From the sequence record NC_031039.1: a stretch of 64,000 nucleotides of DNA. One strand, 5' to 3'. Positions 3,695 to 33,073 of this stretch are shown piece after piece. The notes beneath the pieces are model-generated. The model saw only the letters and a list, made by a program, of their open reading frames with translations, did no database searches and was not told the origin of the DNA. The position numbers were made by a program, and so were the translations under genes. The stretch's first letter is position 1; the number at the start of each line of letters is the position of its first letter.

Positions 3695-4744
3695 TTAACT
3701 TTCAGAGAGTTCATTAAGTTCAGACATTAAGTCTACATCTAAGCGATCAATTTTAAATGTTTCTTTTGTAATAGGAGTTACATTTAGTGCTTTAGTATAA
3801 CCATTTCCTTTTACTGAGAAGAAATCATGGTTTTTAGTAGTTGTATTAAGTCCATTTTCTACAACTGGATTAATATCTTCATCATCAAATAAATGATTAA
3901 AACCCAAGTTATCAAAAGCATTATTAGCATTATAGCGTAAGAATGCATTTACTTCATCGACTAATCCTATTTTAGAATAGATCTCTTCAGTATATTCTAA
4001 TTCATTTTCATAAAGATCCATTAATAGTTCATTTGCCCATTGAACTAATTCTTGCTGTTTATTAATATCAAATTTTTCAAATAACTCTTGAGCTAATAAT
4101 CCCATATATTGACCATGAACTGACTCATCACGGATAATTAAGTTAATAATTTCACCACTGGCTACCATTTTGCCTTGTCCAGCTAGGTATAAAGGATAGA
4201 AGAATCCAGAATAGAATAAGAATGATTCTAACATTACACTGGCTACCATTGCTTTGTATAACATCTCATCAGTAATATCCTTAGTAAAGATAGCGTCATA
4301 ATATTTAACAATTTTTTCGGCTTTATACTGAAGGTTCTTTTGTTCTTCTCCCCATTTAAAAATCTCATCAATTAGACTCATAGAACAAAGTGTTGAGAAA
4401 ATAGCTGAATACGACTTAGCATGTACATGTTCCATTGCACCACTAAAAGCAATAACGGCACTCTTTTGTTCATCTTTAATATGAAGAGAAATTAATGGCA
4501 TTCCTGCATTTCCTTGTTCAGTATCCAATTTTGTTAAACCAACAAGTACTTTGTAGTATGCTTCTTGTTCATCCTTACTAAGTACTTTATTCCAAGTAAC
4601 AATATCTCCAGTTAAATCAATCTCTTTTTCTAACCAAAATTGGGAAGTATTAATATCCCAGAAATCAATAGTATATTCATCAGTAAGGCGGTTCCAGTTA
4701 ACCGCCTTATGAACGATGGGTACAATTTTACTCTCTGTTGTCAT
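3695..4744 (-). CDS. nrdF: Ribonucleotide reductase class Ib beta subunit
   Basis: KAVNWN start, LTKLDTEQ, EHVHAKSYS, ESFLFYSGFF, IIRDESVHG ligand motifs, C-terminal HDFFSVKGNGY. Confidence 0.95.
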   Translation of the reverse strand: MTTESKIVPIVHKAVNWNRLTDEYTIDFWDINTSQFWLEKEIDLTGDIVTWNKVLSKDEQEAYYKVLVGLTKLDTEQGNAGMPLISLHIKDEQKSAVIAFSGAMEHVHAKSYSAIFSTLCSMSLIDEIFKWGEEQKNLQYKAEKIVKYYDAIFTKDITDEMLYKAMVASVMLESFLFYSGFFYPLYLAGQGKMVASGEIINLIIRDESVHGQYMGLLAQELFEKFDINKQQELVQWANELLMDLYENELEYTEEIYSKIGLVDEVNAFLRYNANNAFDNLGFNHLFDDEDINPVVENGLNTTTKNHDFFSVKGNGYTKALNVTPITKETFKIDRLDVDLMSELNELSES

Positions 4745-4770: not shown

Positions 4771-6867
4771 TCAAACTGCACAAGATTCGCAGATGTCATC
4801 TCCTGATTTACTTCTATTACGTACATAGTAAAGACTCTTTAAACCACGTTTATTGGCATAATACATATGACCAACTAATTGATCTGTAGGGATATCACTA
4901 TTGACAAATAAAGTAGTAGAAATACCCTGATCAATATGTTGTTGGATTACTGCAACCATGTCAATAATTTTATTTTGATCCATATCATATGCTGATTTGT
5001 AAGACCATTGAGTTCTACCGTCTAGATATGGCATTGGATAGTATGTTGTAGAGTCATGATATGTTCTGTTTTCAATTCGACTTACAACTGGCATAATAGA
5101 TTGAGTTGAATTCTGTACATAACTAATTGACTGTGTAGGTGCAATAGCAAGTCTATAAGCATGGTATAAACCATTTTCTTTTACTTGTTCTGCTAATTCA
5201 GCCCAATCTTCTTTTGTTGGAACAAAGATTCCCTCAAATAATTCTTTTACTTTTTGACTTCTAGGTGTATAATCATTTTCGATATAACGTTTAAAATAAT
5301 TACCATTAGCATATTCAGAATCTTCAAAACGATGGAATTTTTTATTTTTCTCAATAGCAATTTCCATACTTCGTCTAATACTATGGAAATTCATAATTGC
5401 AAAGAATACATTGGCAAAATCTCTAGCTACAGCACTTTCATATGAAATACTATTTTTAGCAAGGAAACCATGTAAGTTCATTGCGCCTAAACCAACTGAA
5501 TGGAATAGAGCATTTGCTTTTCTTATAGATGGTGCATTTTTGATATCACTCTTATCTGTTACAGATGTTAAAATATCCATTGCAATATCTACAGAATCTT
5601 TAAATTTTTTAGTCTCCATTACATTAACGATATTTAATGATGCAAGGTTACAACTGATTCCCAATCCTAATTCATCTTCTTCTCCATAATTATTAATTAC
5701 TGATACTGAACTTAACTGCATAATTTCAGTACAAAGGTTAGAGAATTTAATTTCACCAATTGCTTTTAAAGCATGTTCTTTATTAGCATTTGTTTTGAAG
5801 AACAGATAAGGGTATCCTGATTCTAATTGAGTCATTGCAATTTGATTCATTAGTTTCATTGGTGATAATTCACATACAAATTTCTTAATATTTGGATTAT
5901 TAACTAATTCATCATACATTACATCTAAATCCATCTCATCTAAAGGAATTCCATATTCTTTTTCGACACTATAAGGAGAGAATGTATAGAACTCTTCTTC
6001 TCCTGATTCTAGCAATTGAATAAATTTATCAGGAACAATAATTCCAGTTGAAAGTGTTTTCATACGAATGCTATCGTCAGCATTGATTTTTTTAGTATTT
6101 AGGAAATGAATAATATCCCCATGAAAAATATTAAGATAAACAGCTCCTGAGCCTTTGCGTTGACCCATCTGATCAGCATAAGAGAAACTTTGTTCCAATA
6201 ATTTCATTACAGGAATAACACCTTTAGCGGCATTTTCTTCACCATTTACTGGATCTCCAAGCATTCTTAATTTAGAAACATTTGTTGAAACCCCTCCACC
6301 AATTTTAGAGAGATACTTTGATTGTCCTTCAATATGACTAATTGAGTTTAGAGTATCATCAACTTCATCTAAGAAACAAGATACAAGTTCCCCTCTTCTT
6401 GCTTTACCAGCATTAAGGAAAGTAGGAGTAGCAGGTTGAACTCTTTGTTCTATCATTGCAACAGCGGCTTGAATTGCTTTGTCTAGATTCCCATCAAATA
6501 GATAGAGAGCAACAATAGCAATTCTATCTTGGTAAGTTTCTAAGTAATGTTTTTTATCTGTAGTTTTCAAGGCATAAGTACTATAAAATTTGGAGATAGC
6601 CATAAATGATTGGAAACTGAATGGTACTTTATTGATCGCTTTATAAACTTCTTCAATTTGTGATAAACTATAATCTTGAAATACATTATAGTAATAGTTA
6701 TTTCCAATCAACCAATTAAGACGTTCAAGTAAATTTGGAAACTTAATAGAATATTCATTAATTTCTTCTGCAAAAGAAGAAATAGCTAATTTGTCATTTT
6801 CTAACTGCCAAAAACCATTGTCACCTTTTTTAGTGATACTGTTGTTGTATTTGAGATAATCCTTCAT
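4771..6867 (-). CDS. nrdE: Ribonucleotide reductase class Ib alpha subunit
   Basis: QPATPTFLNAG, LVSCFL, GQRKGSGAVYL, FSNLCTEI, CNLASLN, AIAPTQSISY and C-terminal CESC; uninterrupted. Confidence 0.96.
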   Translation of the reverse strand: MKDYLKYNNSITKKGDNGFWQLENDKLAISSFAEEINEYSIKFPNLLERLNWLIGNNYYYNVFQDYSLSQIEEVYKAINKVPFSFQSFMAISKFYSTYALKTTDKKHYLETYQDRIAIVALYLFDGNLDKAIQAAVAMIEQRVQPATPTFLNAGKARRGELVSCFLDEVDDTLNSISHIEGQSKYLSKIGGGVSTNVSKLRMLGDPVNGEENAAKGVIPVMKLLEQSFSYADQMGQRKGSGAVYLNIFHGDIIHFLNTKKINADDSIRMKTLSTGIIVPDKFIQLLESGEEEFYTFSPYSVEKEYGIPLDEMDLDVMYDELVNNPNIKKFVCELSPMKLMNQIAMTQLESGYPYLFFKTNANKEHALKAIGEIKFSNLCTEIMQLSSVSVINNYGEEDELGLGISCNLASLNIVNVMETKKFKDSVDIAMDILTSVTDKSDIKNAPSIRKANALFHSVGLGAMNLHGFLAKNSISYESAVARDFANVFFAIMNFHSIRRSMEIAIEKNKKFHRFEDSEYANGNYFKRYIENDYTPRSQKVKELFEGIFVPTKEDWAELAEQVKENGLYHAYRLAIAPTQSISYVQNSTQSIMPVVSRIENRTYHDSTTYYPMPYLDGRTQWSYKSAYDMDQNKIIDMVAVIQQHIDQGISTTLFVNSDIPTDQLVGHMYYANKRGLKSLYYVRNRSKSGDDICESCAV

Positions 6868-21203: not shown

Positions 21204-21908
21204 ATGTTAGTACCAAAGATGAATAATCCAAGTCTTATAAATGAAGATGAGTCTTATGAAGTTGTAATTGATTCTATTGATGATCGTGCAGACTTTTTTA
21301 ATTTTGAAATTACTTCTAATGAGAAGGAAAGACTAAAATTTATCAAACGAATTGAAAAGATAATTAGACGTTCATTTGAATATAAAACTTATATTGGCTT
21401 TTTAAAAAATGAACTAGATTTGACAAAATGTACTTTCCTTCCAATGGTAGATACAAAGGAAATTAAAAAAGTTGGTTTAGAATTCCATCACTACCCTTTT
21501 ACTCTTTTTGATATTGTAAGCATAGTACTAGATGAACATATTCTTGTTAATGGAGAAAAAAGAATTAATCCATTTGATATTGCTGAAGAAGTCATGGAAT
21601 TACATTATCAGAATTATATAGGGTTAGTTCCACTTACAAAAACTGTTCATGAGCTAGTACACTCTGGAAAGATTTTTGTAAACCTTAACTATGTGTTTGG
21701 TAACTATACTAAGTTTATTAATAAGTATGAGTCAGCCAATACTGAAAATTTCCAAGTATTATTAGGTAATTTAGAACAACTTAGTCAGAAAGAAGATAGA
21801 GAAGGAAGTATTAATGGTGATATCCTAGACAAGAGTCTATTAAAACTTAATATTAAAGATATTGAAAATCCTAATAAGATTGAAGTAGAAGATGAACTTC
21901 TTGCATAA
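21204..21908 (+). CDS. HNH-like protein, paralog of 33104-33796
   Basis: LEFHHYPF...GLVPLTKTVHELVH resembles the HNH beta-beta-alpha-metal pattern; late motif AACA-ATATAA-TA at 21161-21172. Confidence 0.6.
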   Translation: MLVPKMNNPSLINEDESYEVVIDSIDDRADFFNFEITSNEKERLKFIKRIEKIIRRSFEYKTYIGFLKNELDLTKCTFLPMVDTKEIKKVGLEFHHYPFTLFDIVSIVLDEHILVNGEKRINPFDIAEEVMELHYQNYIGLVPLTKTVHELVHSGKIFVNLNYVFGNYTKFINKYESANTENFQVLLGNLEQLSQKEDREGSINGDILDKSLLKLNIKDIENPNKIEVEDELLA

Positions 21909-21967
21909 ATATTAAGTTTTAAAAAATTTATTTCTCTTTTTTATTTTAAAAATTACCCTGCATTTCA

Positions 21968-21979
21968 AACAATTTAATA
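21968..21979 (+). promoter_or_regulatory. Late promoter motif driving the intergenic ncRNA
   Basis: AACA-ATTTAA-TA; predicted +1 at 21979 is the base immediately before the first hairpin. Confidence 0.65.
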
Positions 21980-22239
21980 CGTGTGAGAGTAGCATCCTTT
22001 CACGATGTTCACACGGAAGGAGATAGTGAGAGGTCTCCTTCTTACTCAACTGTTCGCAATGTGATTTCTCCATTTAGTACTCTGTGCATACCTCTATAGG
22101 TAAACTCTTTATGGGATGATCTTTGTCATTGGTTTTTGTTTCACCTCCGCATTAGTCACTGAGAGGTTTACCGATCCTCTTGGTGACAATGTGACTGTTC
22201 TAGTTGTTAATGTTGGTGCAATTCCAACAACAGTCACCA
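21979..22239 (+). ncRNA. Structured ~260-nt non-coding RNA ending in a tRNA-like acceptor/T-arm domain with CCA
   Basis: GC-richer island without a long ORF; helices CGTGTGA/TCACACG, GAAGGAGA/TCTCCTTC, GGTAAACTCT/AGAGGTTTACC; 3' GACTGTT...GTTGG-TGCAATT-CCAAC-AACAGTC-A-CCA. Confidence 0.75.
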
Positions 22240-22468
22240 AATCTAAAATATAAAATTAGCTTTTCATTGGCGGAAAACACTTTTTTATATTTAAGAAAAT
22301 ATAACCATCAAACGTTTCTATTCCCTATTAATAGTTAGATGATAACGATCTTTCTATTACATCCAATCCGATACTCCTTCTAATTTTTATTGGTCTAATC
22401 AATTCTGTTCGCCATTGATTTAACTAATAAGATTTAGAAGGGGTAAATTATTGAAAGGAATGATTTAA

Positions 22469-22828
22469 ATGAATATAGTACTTGAAGCTTTGCTTCTAAA
22501 AAAGTATGAAAAAGAAATTGATGCATTACATACACATTTAAAAGCTGAAATAGAAAGAGCTATTAATATTTATAAAAATTTAGCTATTGAAGAACTCTTA
22601 GATTATAATAAAAATTATGAACTACAAGAAGAATTCTCTTCTCCGTTTAAAAGTAAGTGGATTAAGAGTATTGAATATCTTACACATTTAAAAAGATCTA
22701 TGAATCTTGGTCAATTTAATATTCTTAAAGCAGATTTAGATGAGTTAGATAACCATCTGTCCCATCCAAAATTAAATAGAGACAAGACTATTATTCGTTC
22801 TTTAATTGATGAAATATTAAAATTTTAA
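22469..22828 (+). CDS. Hypothetical protein
   Basis: 119 aa, RBS GAAAGGA. Confidence 0.7.
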   Translation: MNIVLEALLLKKYEKEIDALHTHLKAEIERAINIYKNLAIEELLDYNKNYELQEEFSSPFKSKWIKSIEYLTHLKRSMNLGQFNILKADLDELDNHLSHPKLNRDKTIIRSLIDEILKF

Positions 22829-22904
22829 TTTCATCATTTTTTATAAAAATAATCTTACATTTAACATATAAATATGGAATAAATTTTACTCTTCTAGATT
22901 TTAT

Positions 22905-22976
22905 TCCCCTTTAGCTCAATGGTAGAGCATCTCACTGTTACTGAGATGGTTGCAAGTTCGAGTCTTGCAGGGGGAG
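22905..22976 (+). tRNA. tRNA-Asn (GTT), CCA not encoded
   Basis: Cloverleaf TCCCCTT/AGGGGGA, D-arm GCTC/GAGC, anticodon arm TCTCA-CTGTTAC-TGAGA, T-arm GCAAG-TTCGAGT-CTTGC, discriminator G; late motif at 22863-22874. Confidence 0.95.
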
Positions 22977-23019
22977 TAAAGTCTAGAAGGGTTTTTACTG
23001 CCTATTTAGGAGGTCTATA

Positions 23020-30856: not shown

Positions 30857-33073
30857 TTAAACTTCCTCATAAATAACCTTATCTTCTTGATTCTCTTCAG
30901 ATACAGTTATTTTTACTGATTCTTTCAATAACATAGTATCATTATTGTTTAAACTAGACTCATAATTAAAGCGATCAGATAATTTATAGATATCATGTTG
31001 ATTTATTTGAATATCTGAAATTTTATATTGATCATGATAACCTATACCTTCTATTGGTGAGTGAATTGTATGAACTATTCGATCATCATTGAGAACCATA
31101 TTAGAATCATCTTTATACAATTGAGATTGCCACCACATTACATCTCTTATATTTAATGGTACTTTGATATTAAGATTAGTATCTAAGATATTAGAAATAT
31201 CTAATAGATCGATAGTGCTTGCAAAACTATGATCTGTTGTTGCACTAAAATCATCAAATAATTTAAGAGTATTAAATGTTTTATCATCAAATGAAAATAC
31301 AATATTAGCTGATAAAAGATCAATAGTGTATGATTTAAAAATACTAATAATTGTATAAAGATATTTTTCTATATATGAACTTAGTCCAATAAAATTATTA
31401 TTTGTAAAATATCTTCTTACTTTCGGATCACTAATATAGTTTCCAATTGATTCAGTTAATTCAAATACTCTATCTTTATAAAAATTAGCTAATAATTTCT
31501 CACTATCTTTAATAGTATCTGGTACTTGAATATATTTATATAGATCATAATTTCTTGTTTTAATGTAATCACTAAATGTTTCACTATCACCATAAATAGA
31601 ATTGCTGATTTTAGTCCTCATTTCAATATCCCATATCTCTTGAAGTTTTCTATAGATATGATAGTTATCAGTTTCTATAATCATATCTTCTAGATATTTT
31701 CGCATTTTCTCATTTGTATTAAAAACCTCTAAGAAATCTTCGATAGAATATTTTTCTTTCTCAAAACCTGTCATTTTAAAATTCTCAGTAAATTCAATAA
31801 TTTCTTTATAATTATTGATTCTAGAAGCATTTTTAATAGCTATCTCTTTAATTTCACTCATTATACTACTAATATCTATACTATTTTCTATGTCCCGATA
31901 GCCATAGATATAATTAATAACATCTGGATTCTTACTTATAGTATCCCTATAACCATGACTTCTAATAACTAAAGATTGCAGAGCTACTATAGCATCATAT
32001 ATCTTGACTATATTTTCAGAAATACTTCCGTTAATAAATCCAAAGTCAATACCTTCTTTTTGACTATAATCTAATTGAAACTTATTTAATATTGACATGA
32101 AATAAGCTAACCCAATTGTTTCATTCATAGCATCTATTGTAGTATCAACACTCATATATTTTGAATTAATAAAATTAAAAGGAATACTCTTTACTTCATC
32201 TTCTGATGCTTGCCAATAAGGATCATTTGAAACAATTGAATTATAATCTAGAATAATATCTTTTTTAAAATCAACTTCTTTATCAGCAGGTGTTTTAAAA
32301 AACATTAGATAAGGATCATTATAGTTTAATTTCCCAGTTCTTGGATCTGTACTATAACCCTTTGCCAATACATATCTATATATCTCTATATTATCAAAAC
32401 CAAATAAATTGATAATTTCAAGAATAGCCTGATTAGTTCCTTTATGAGATAATAATGTATTAATCATTTTTAATAATCTTCTTTGATAGTTAATTGGCAT
32501 ATCCTCAAAATAATCAAGACCAACTGAAATAAATGCATTTTTAAGAGTCCTCATATCATAAACATCTATATTAAAGAAATTTTCCATCTTTCTAGTTAGA
32601 TATCTCTGGACGGTAGAGAATATTAAGAACAATTTAATAAATCCTCTATACATATCTTGGTTTTTAAATGCCTTAGTAGAGGTAACTTTATTATGATAAT
32701 TTAGTACTTCATAGTAGCACTCATAAAATAGATTCATTTCTTCTCTTGATAAAGTAGGTCTTGTGGCTAATAAAATATGAAGATCTTTGGCAGTTCTAGA
32801 AGTTAAATAGTCTATACCCCAGTTATCATACAATTCTTTATAGTAACTATTTAACTCAGTATAACCATCAATTATTTTTTTCTTAGTTTCTTCATCTACA
32901 TCATATAAACCTAAACGTATATTTATGAATTCATTAGACAAACGATAAGAATTTGTAGTTTCCAAGGAATCAGCTAATTCAGTATCTTTTAGAATGAGAC
33001 CATTGGCGAACTCAAGGACGCTTTCAATCTCATTTATATCCCCTTGTGAGAGGACACTATAATTGCTTCCCAA
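30857..33073 (-). CDS. Baseplate wedge subunit (P2 gpI / T4 gp7-like motif)
   Basis: INTLLSHKGTNQAILEIINLFGFDNIEIY resembles the Tail_P2_I core; 738 aa. Confidence 0.55.
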   Translation of the reverse strand: MGSNYSVLSQGDINEIESVLEFANGLILKDTELADSLETTNSYRLSNEFINIRLGLYDVDEETKKKIIDGYTELNSYYKELYDNWGIDYLTSRTAKDLHILLATRPTLSREEMNLFYECYYEVLNYHNKVTSTKAFKNQDMYRGFIKLFLIFSTVQRYLTRKMENFFNIDVYDMRTLKNAFISVGLDYFEDMPINYQRRLLKMINTLLSHKGTNQAILEIINLFGFDNIEIYRYVLAKGYSTDPRTGKLNYNDPYLMFFKTPADKEVDFKKDIILDYNSIVSNDPYWQASEDEVKSIPFNFINSKYMSVDTTIDAMNETIGLAYFMSILNKFQLDYSQKEGIDFGFINGSISENIVKIYDAIVALQSLVIRSHGYRDTISKNPDVINYIYGYRDIENSIDISSIMSEIKEIAIKNASRINNYKEIIEFTENFKMTGFEKEKYSIEDFLEVFNTNEKMRKYLEDMIIETDNYHIYRKLQEIWDIEMRTKISNSIYGDSETFSDYIKTRNYDLYKYIQVPDTIKDSEKLLANFYKDRVFELTESIGNYISDPKVRRYFTNNNFIGLSSYIEKYLYTIISIFKSYTIDLLSANIVFSFDDKTFNTLKLFDDFSATTDHSFASTIDLLDISNILDTNLNIKVPLNIRDVMWWQSQLYKDDSNMVLNDDRIVHTIHSPIEGIGYHDQYKISDIQINQHDIYKLSDRFNYESSLNNNDTMLLKESVKITVSEENQEDKVIYEEV

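Follow-up and report, generated by a model that had tools for sequence, protein, structure and literature searches.

A late structured RNA of Bacillus phage AR9 with an apparently tRNA-derived minihelix at its 3' end

What fills the 560 nt that separate genes g242 and g243 of Bacillus phage AR9, and does this stretch do more than space the two genes? The gap lies in a window of 64 kb (the whole stretch of DNA analyzed here; AR9 coordinate = window + 186000), and positions are those of the window unless marked as AR9. AR9 and PBS1 are classical model phages, with a uracil-containing genome, two multisubunit RNA polymerases and generalized transduction, and no non-coding RNA (ncRNA) had been annotated in them before. 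The stop codon of g242 (21204-21908, + strand) opens the gap at 21908, and the start of g243 (22469-22828, + strand), an orphan gene of 119 amino acids (aa), closes it at 22469; the annotations of AR9, PBS1, vB_BspM_Internexus and vB_BsuM-Goe21 (hereafter Internexus and Goe21) all leave it empty. We find that the gap holds a real and unannotated late RNA, structured and undescribed, which ends in what is best read as a tRNA-derived minihelix. An earlier reading of the bare sequence (the first-pass annotation) had proposed an RNA of this kind; as an observation it is confirmed, and its interpretation is partly supported.

The transcript and its fold

In 100-nt windows the GC fraction is 0.39-0.43 at 21950-22249 against 0.17-0.31 in the flanks, and the 261-nt RNA considered here (21979-22239) has a GC content of ~40% against a background of ~27%, a signature that the island shares with the true tRNA-Asn gene downstream (22904-22977). 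The late promoters of AR9, which belong to its non-virion RNA polymerase (nvRNAP), have the form AACA-N6-T-A/G, the last base being the mapped late 5' end. One such unit, the AACA-N6-TA sequence AACAATTTAATA, lies at 21968-21979 on the + strand with A21979 as its +1. The motif alone proves nothing, since its bare form is no more frequent in the window than expected (76 matches found, 85 expected). The start at 21979 is experimentally established because the differential RNA sequencing (dRNA-seq) of Lavysh et al. 2017 (PMC5312081, Table S3) lists exactly this site, AR9 207979(+), as a late transcription start site (TSS) of class Primary, with a step height of 73, a step factor of 37.5 and a terminator exonuclease (TEX) enrichment of 2.02. 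The table files it under the gene name 'tRNA', with no length for an untranslated region, and the text of the paper does not discuss an ncRNA at this site. Our search of the literature found no described ncRNA of AR9 or PBS1 and no phage CCA decoy. The 560-nt gap between two + strand genes, the GC-richer island and the late +1 at 21979 had all been called by the first-pass annotation and hold as called; its description of the RNA as undescribed is right insofar as no record annotates it, and has to be qualified insofar as the start is published and assigned to a tRNA gene.

Two further late starts deserve mention beside this one. Table S3 also gives an antisense late TSS, AR9 207906(-) (window 21906), which coincides with the stop codon of g242 and points into that gene; the RNA starts 73 nt away on the + strand. 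The other start, at 32639 in the window, opens a second long late leader (491 nt), which was considered as a paralog and proved unrelated; it runs antisense to a 738-aa gene on the minus strand.

Is the transcript structured? The + strand of 21968-22250 has a minimum free energy (MFE) of -77.1 kcal/mol against -64.1 +/- 4.6 in dinucleotide shuffles (z = -2.86; 1 of 200 shuffles is as good), and the minus strand gives z = -2.0. The first hairpin, H1 (21980-22015, + strand), consists of 7 bp, a 5-nt bulge on the 5' side, 5 bp and the 7-nt loop CUUUCAC, with pair probabilities of 0.77-0.97 in all contexts; its 7+5 bp geometry is the same as that of the tRNA-like unit at the 3' end, and the promoter is placed exactly at its edge. 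It is followed by H2 (22016-22041, + strand), a 9-bp stem GAAGGAGAU / GUCUCCUUC that competes with an alternative pairing in the partition function and has pair probabilities of 0.33-0.95 depending on context. The long helix H3 (22149-22192, + strand), with 5-6 + 12 bp and a 9-nt loop, is present in every MFE and centroid structure and abuts the acceptor stem of the 3' unit. H1, H3 and the terminal unit recur in the MFE structure or the ensemble of every folded context, and the two hairpins and long helix noted in the first-pass annotation are thus found where it had placed them. The body of ~214 nt that they form (21979-22192, + strand; GC ~0.40), set apart by the fold z-score and by having no match to an Rfam or protein family, is the putative 5' product of RNase P discussed below.

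No known RNA family accounts for it. At gathering thresholds Rfam reports tRNA-Asn alone in the whole window, and at E<=10 it adds only meaningless miRNA-like hairpin matches in 21850-22500; the models without a match to the RNA include tRNA, tmRNA, signal recognition particle (SRP) RNA, GOLLD, ROOL, Y RNA, mascRNA, T-box, riboswitches and ribozymes. ARAGORN with default settings calls no tRNA in 21900-22470. Relaxed settings, including the mitochondrial and tmRNA modes, yield implausible calls only: one at 22146-22217 has a poor T-arm and skips the module at 22193-22239, and the sole tmRNA call is a spurious permuted one on the opposite strand. The statement of the first-pass annotation that the RNA does not fit tmRNA or SRP is borne out, and the comparison with Rfam that it had proposed leaves the RNA unassigned.

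The island might instead encode small proteins, from the + strand open reading frames (ORFs) at 21983-22099 and 22116-22253. Four mechanical ORFs of 38-53 aa do overlap it, and 'ORF-less', as it had been called, is not literally correct; the term stands in the sense that none of the four has a ribosome-binding site or a match in Pfam or PHROG (six candidate products searched). The single substitution of PBS1 is non-synonymous in both overlapping frames, the frame having been worked out from the sequence.

Only four phages, ~99% identical and constituting the PBS1 species, carry the RNA. The 571 bases around it are 100% identical to the AR9 record KU878088 and 99.3-99.8% identical to PBS1, Internexus and Goe21, and a blastn search in distant mode of 50,697 phage records gave no match besides these. 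In 21979-22239 Internexus is unchanged, and PBS1 differs at a single base, A22230G, which turns an acceptor U-A pair into U-G and so keeps the pairing, a point in favor of the processing module proposed below. Goe21 lacks 4 nt (22106-22109) in the poorly structured middle. Because the flanks differ by only ~0.5% within the species, this variation has no statistical weight.

A truncated tRNA at the 3' end

What kind of element closes the RNA? The 47-nt unit at 22193-22239 (+ strand) has a 7-bp acceptor stem, GACTGTT (22193-99) with AACAGTC (22229-35), continuous with a 5-bp T-stem, GTTGG (22212-16) with CCAAC (22224-28), which carries the 7-nt loop TGCAATT; the discriminator A at 22236 is followed by an encoded CCA (22237-39). 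The 5' strands of the two stems are joined by a 12-nt connector, CTAGTTGTTAAT, and both the D arm and the anticodon arm, which belong to the full cloverleaf of a canonical tRNA (RF00005), are missing. All 12 pairs are Watson-Crick, the 3' strand runs unbroken from T-stem to acceptor as in tRNA, and U54, A58, the closing pair G53-C61 and the NCCA end are all in place. The ACCA tail is not necessarily fully single-stranded, because G22191-T22192 can pair with A22236-C22237.

The shape itself could be fortuitous. A scan of both strands of the window for 7 bp, 0-25 nt and 5 bp with a 7-nt loop and NCCA returns 22193-22239 as its single match. With G-U pairs allowed, however, shuffled 64-kb windows average 0.42 matches on both strands and 32% of them contain at least one, so that the bare shape, found in a third of them, is unremarkable; this is what speaks for a chance hairpin followed by CCA in a GC-richer patch. 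With Watson-Crick pairs only, the expectation falls to 0.02 per window, and with U54 and A58 added none of 300 shuffles has a match, these stricter criteria having been picked after the match was seen. Shuffles of the island alone give P = 0.0014 for the module.

A chance origin also has to reckon with the T-arm. The 17-nt T-arm GTTGGTGCAATTCCAAC has 100 exact matches in 99 IMG/VR stretches, of which 25 lie within tRNAs called by ARAGORN at default settings and 33 within those called at a 90% threshold. Most of these are tRNA-Met(CAT), some of them initiator-like genes that have a C1xA72 mismatch and an ACCA end, and a further 22-29 matches fall within tRNA arrays. A control sequence in which only the loop is permuted has 17 matches, none inside a tRNA and 0-1 near one, which makes the T-arm ~6-fold enriched over the control. 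Position 55 of the T-loop is G instead of U, and the real phage tRNAs with this T-arm share G55. The AR9 T-arm, including this unusual base, is thus a genuine phage tRNA T-arm, and the 3' unit is best read as tRNA-derived. The first-pass annotation had the coordinates of the unit exactly right, and the resemblance extends beyond the shape that it described. We regard chance and the coding of small proteins, even taken together, as very improbable explanations of the island.

The same T-arm turns up in two other settings. In L062 (IMGVR_UViG_3300045988_166770, 1973-2100) it is part of the same architecture, GGTTGAG / 10 nt / GTTGGTGCAATTCCAAC / CTCAACT / ACCA, nested in the apparent anticodon loop of a larger tRNA-like gene with its own T-arm and ACCA; this gene lies in a tRNA array and receives no ARAGORN call. 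In eight other IMG/VR loci (L026, L029, L031, L052, L084, L093, L104 and L114) it recurs in a hairpin, CGTGTT / ~11 nt / GTTGGTGCAATTCCAAC / A / AACGCG, directly 5' of the Shine-Dalgarno sequence AAGGAG, as a T-arm-like leader element.

The corresponding slot in related jumbo phages

Do relatives of AR9 have anything comparable at this place? They were found through homologs of g242, which show 58-73% identity in metagenomic jumbo-phage contigs and 56% in BpSp; the loci compared were those of BpSp, LPJP1, MarsHill, one IMG/VR contig and eleven distinct metagenomic contigs (L-numbers denote fetched loci). The slot after the g242 homolog holds 8-9 tRNAs in L010 and in L018 and ~12 in L014. In L011 it holds tRNA-Ser, an odd tRNA ending in ACCA, more tRNA-like pieces and tRNA-Asn, and in L012 a GOLLD RNA with tRNA-Ser, tRNA-Asp and tRNA-Asn. 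In L119 a late-type motif, AACATAATATTA, precedes a ~80-nt leader with a strong hairpin and tRNA-Arg(TCT), and in BpSp and L016 late-type motifs are followed by 130-170 nt of hairpin-rich non-coding sequence. The AR9 island thus occupies a conserved 'late tRNA/ncRNA slot' with quickly changing contents, in which AR9 retains a single tRNA along with this RNA and its truncated tRNA. Such a slot in PBS1-like jumbo phages offers a tractable laboratory-host system for the function of tRNA-adjacent phage ncRNAs.

GOLLD and ROOL are phage RNAs found near tRNA islands (PMC12286853). In L012 (Logan SRR12632055_905, a 198-kb contig whose g242 homolog has 63% identity), a late-type motif at 4926-4937 is followed by a ~830-nt RNA, the 3' domain of which is GOLLD (RF02032, 226.8 bits, 5325-5769); it ends 6 nt before a CCA-encoding tRNA-Ser at 5776 (region 4926-5866). 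The arrangement points to RNase P as the source of the GOLLD 3' end, and the RNA is apparently driven by the late-type promoter. GOLLD was rejected for AR9 itself, as the tool that scores the L012 RNA so highly finds no match to RF02032 at 21850-22500 with E<=10. The tRNA-Ser of L011 (JGI 3300081791, a 270-kb contig of ~51% GC) also encodes CCA. At 5055-5400 of this locus the gene is followed by a cluster of non-canonical tRNA-like elements: an atypical ACCA-ending tRNA (Rfam tRNA, 34 bits, 5068-5153), a ~160-nt element in which a T-arm and CCA accompany an acceptor-like stem (~5160-5322), and a short hairpin containing a T-arm.

Other features of these neighborhoods vary as well. A gene for a 2H-phosphoesterase or 2',5'-RNA-ligase-like (LigT-like) protein lies in or beside the tRNA island of L010, L011, L014, L019 and L121, and in several relatives there is also a GGDEF-domain gene next to that for RNase H; in AR9 the slot is taken by the orphan g243 instead. 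A search for g243 homologs, intended as a test of whether leader and gene co-occur, found them in the PBS1 species only. Stretches of the CACCUCC / CCUCCUUU type, which resemble the 3' end of 16S rRNA (anti-Shine-Dalgarno), are present in the late ncRNAs after g242 of AR9 (22140-22156), L016 (~6772-6784), L119 (~1293-1305) and BpSp (L004, ~3822-3835); they may be a coincidence, because their positions are not conserved.

The one tRNA of the AR9 slot is a genuine tRNA-Asn(GTT) (22904-22977, + strand) with a late promoter of its own (TSS AR9 208874); it is followed by TAA and, as the first-pass annotation had it, encodes no CCA. The gene and ~60 nt upstream of it (22855-22980) differ by dozens of substitutions and indels between AR9/Goe21 and PBS1/Internexus (L002 and L009 were compared), which in genomes otherwise ~99% identical suggests that an allele was replaced at a recombination hot spot.

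These comparisons bear on whether the AR9 unit is simply what decay has left. On this account it would be a pseudo-tRNA from an ancestral array that has lost its D and anticodon arms by deletion, and the island would be the leader of g243 without a selected RNA function. The slot of the relatives has 3-12 tRNAs against one in AR9, and the locus is recombinationally unstable within the species, as the tRNA-Asn allele swap and the ~60-nt indels illustrate. Neither BpSp nor any relative of 58-73% identity has the RNA, the sole start listed for g243 is 207979, and conservation does not exceed that of the flanks. Against decay, neither the module, with its 12 pairs, nor any of the three helices upstream of it has been disrupted, a GC content of ~40% has been kept in a genome of ~27%, and the promoter borders directly on the first helix. 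That T-arm, A73 and CCA have all survived is also more than would be expected of a random deletion product. This is the main rival, unlikely as we judge it to be on balance; were it true, the AR9 element would document the decay of a phage tRNA array.

Proposed processing of the transcript and competing accounts

What, then, could a tRNA-derived unit do at the end of such an RNA? The reading that we favor, and to which we give slightly less than an even chance, is that it acts as a processing module from which RNase P releases a ~214-nt RNA and a 47-nt minihelix. Hairpins made of acceptor, T-stem and T-loop with a 3' RCCA are efficient substrates of this enzyme, natural ones being phage transcripts such as M3 RNA and the P1/P7 C4 antisense RNA, and the acceptor/T stack, T-loop and RCCA suffice for cleavage (PMC11143913). 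The AR9 unit presents the 12-bp stack, the T-loop and ACCA, and the nucleotide N-1 before the putative cleavage site is U, which suits this reading. M3 and the C4 RNAs come from E. coli phages and were demonstrated biochemically, whereas cleavage in AR9 is predicted, for a unit with a 12-nt bulge in the 5' strand and a possible pairing of -2/-1 with A73/C74. In B. subtilis, 3' maturation is the task of exonucleases where the precursor encodes CCA and of RNase Z where it does not.

The module would descend from a tRNA gene and would have been kept as a 'punctuation' element. Host RNase P would recognize the acceptor/T-stem stack, T-loop and RCCA and cut between U22192 and G22193. Because CCA is encoded, trimming of the 3' side would fall to the B. 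subtilis 3' exonucleases and not to RNase Z. The products would be the 47-nt minihelix and a structured RNA of ~214 nt (21979-22192) whose 3' end would be fixed, with H3 closing it, and cleavage would separate both from the downstream g243 message. The position of the 214-nt RNA suggests a role akin to that of GOLLD and other ncRNAs that occur with tRNAs in the tRNA islands of phages. A processing signal is the only functional guess that has contextual support, from the late-promoter/leader/tRNA-Arg arrangement and the GOLLD abutting tRNA-Ser in relatives. If it is correct, AR9 shows in a bacterial virus how a tRNA-like element can punctuate a non-coding transcript, and supplies RNase P and the 3'-end enzymes of B. 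subtilis with a natural substrate of the minihelix kind.

A number of points weigh against this proposal. The ease with which shuffled windows yield the bare shape and the G at position 55 of the T-loop belong here. Minihelix substrates of RNase P have a single-stranded 5' leader; here the leader positions -2/-1 can pair with H3 or with A73/C74, and the latter pairing of G-2/U-1 could impair RNase P cleavage or shift it. The tables of Lavysh et al. (PMC5312081) give TSSs only, and the cleavage and the stable 214-nt and 47-nt species are what we infer. No terminator was found 3' of the tRNA-like unit and before g243, and the region may serve simply as the leader of that gene. The density of substitutions in the RNA is no different from that of the flanks, in a comparison without power. 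Searches with nhmmer and blastn of 21961-22470 found no homolog of the RNA in any of the loci compared, BpSp and the eleven distinct metagenomic contigs included. One pattern of the RNA body, exact or degenerate, matched AR9 alone in viral contigs, and four patterns, two each in genome and metagenome collections, had zero matches. An alignment by MAFFT of the late-promoter non-coding stretches of AR9, BpSp, L016, L119 and L012 contained nothing alignable. The first-pass annotation would have taken a lack of conservation or covariation in related phages as a refutation, and this outcome has come about by half: conservation does not extend past the ~99%-identical group, and covariation is unobtainable rather than negative, because there is no homolog beyond the species and only one substitution and one deletion within it.

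Alternatively, the 47-nt minihelix or the whole RNA might act in trans on proteins that recognize the 3' ends of tRNAs, serving them as a decoy or sponge; the candidates are the CCA-adding enzyme, EF-Tu, aminoacyl-tRNA synthetases and CCA-modifying toxins. The 12-bp stack, T-loop and ACCA are features that such proteins recognize, the RNA is expressed late from its own promoter, and the neighborhood in relatives is devoted to tRNA biology, with a LigT-like gene beside the g242 homolog. This is set against an acceptor stem that has no recognized minihelix identity element such as G3:U70. Nor has it a counterpart in any relative: a scan of 124 kb of their loci for other 7+5 bp minihelices with a T-loop or CCA found none of interest. 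We consider such mimicry improbable, and the decoy for defense systems and the mimic of a T-box ligand that the first-pass annotation had suggested are unsupported. About equally doubtful is a combined proposal, which takes the 47-nt unit for a functional tRNA mimic of minimal size and the ~214-nt body for this lineage's own compact equivalent of the GOLLD/ROOL-type RNAs. In that event a CCA-ended minihelix would be engaged in trans by host tRNA enzymes or tRNA-targeting defense toxins, and no smaller natural tRNA decoy would be on record for a bacterial virus.

Known systems help to place the RNA. Like GOLLD and ROOL, it is a structured phage ncRNA beside tRNAs (PMC12286853), and in L012 GOLLD occupies the same slot; it differs in being ~260 nt and not ~800 nt long, in matching neither model at E<=10, and in having no alignment with the L012 RNA. 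Phage tRNA genes and pseudogenes share with the AR9 unit the 7-bp acceptor, the 5-bp T-stem, a T-arm identical to that of tRNA-Met(CAT), A73 and CCA, whereas the AR9 unit lacks the D and anticodon arms and receives no ARAGORN or Rfam call. The mascRNA of MALAT1 is a eukaryotic nuclear cloverleaf with D-like and anticodon-like arms, to which CCA is added post-transcriptionally. The likeness is that a tRNA-like element ends a longer ncRNA, so that excision by RNase P would make both the upstream 3' end and a small CCA-bearing RNA; the AR9 unit, in contrast, has acceptor and T arms only, its CCA is encoded, and the Rfam mascRNA model does not match it. The tmRNA and the bacterial Y RNA YrlA are also partial tRNA mimics built from acceptor stem and T-arm. 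In tmRNA, however, it is the two termini of the entire molecule that pair as the acceptor stem, and there is a tag reading frame, and YrlA accompanies an Rsr/Ro60 gene; neither model has a match in AR9.

How far the transcript extends beyond the CCA bears on a last possibility. The 261-nt transcript expected by the first-pass annotation has a mapped start at 21979, but its end at the CCA is an assumption; no terminator was found after it. Since Table S3 lists no further TSS between 207979 and 208874, g243 is probably co-transcribed from 21979 (PMC5312081). The AT-rich spacer before g243 (22240-22468, + strand), in which no intrinsic terminator was detected, holds a long imperfect AT-rich hairpin of ~35 pairs (22362-22455) just 5' of the gene, with only weak miRNA-precursor-like matches in Rfam. 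The island and this hairpin might form a cis-regulatory leader that controls the translation or stability of g243, the resemblance to tRNA being incidental. A leader of 490 nt without an intervening TSS or terminator and with a large hairpin just upstream of the start is what speaks for it. Yet the hairpin leaves the likely ribosome-binding site of g243, AAAGGAA (22454-61), uncovered, no riboswitch or T-box model matches, g243 as an orphan offers no clue to a ligand, and the identity of the T-arm to that of real tRNAs is left unexplained. We hold this account, too, to be very improbable. The 22362-22455 hairpin could in its own right be a processing site or a stability element.

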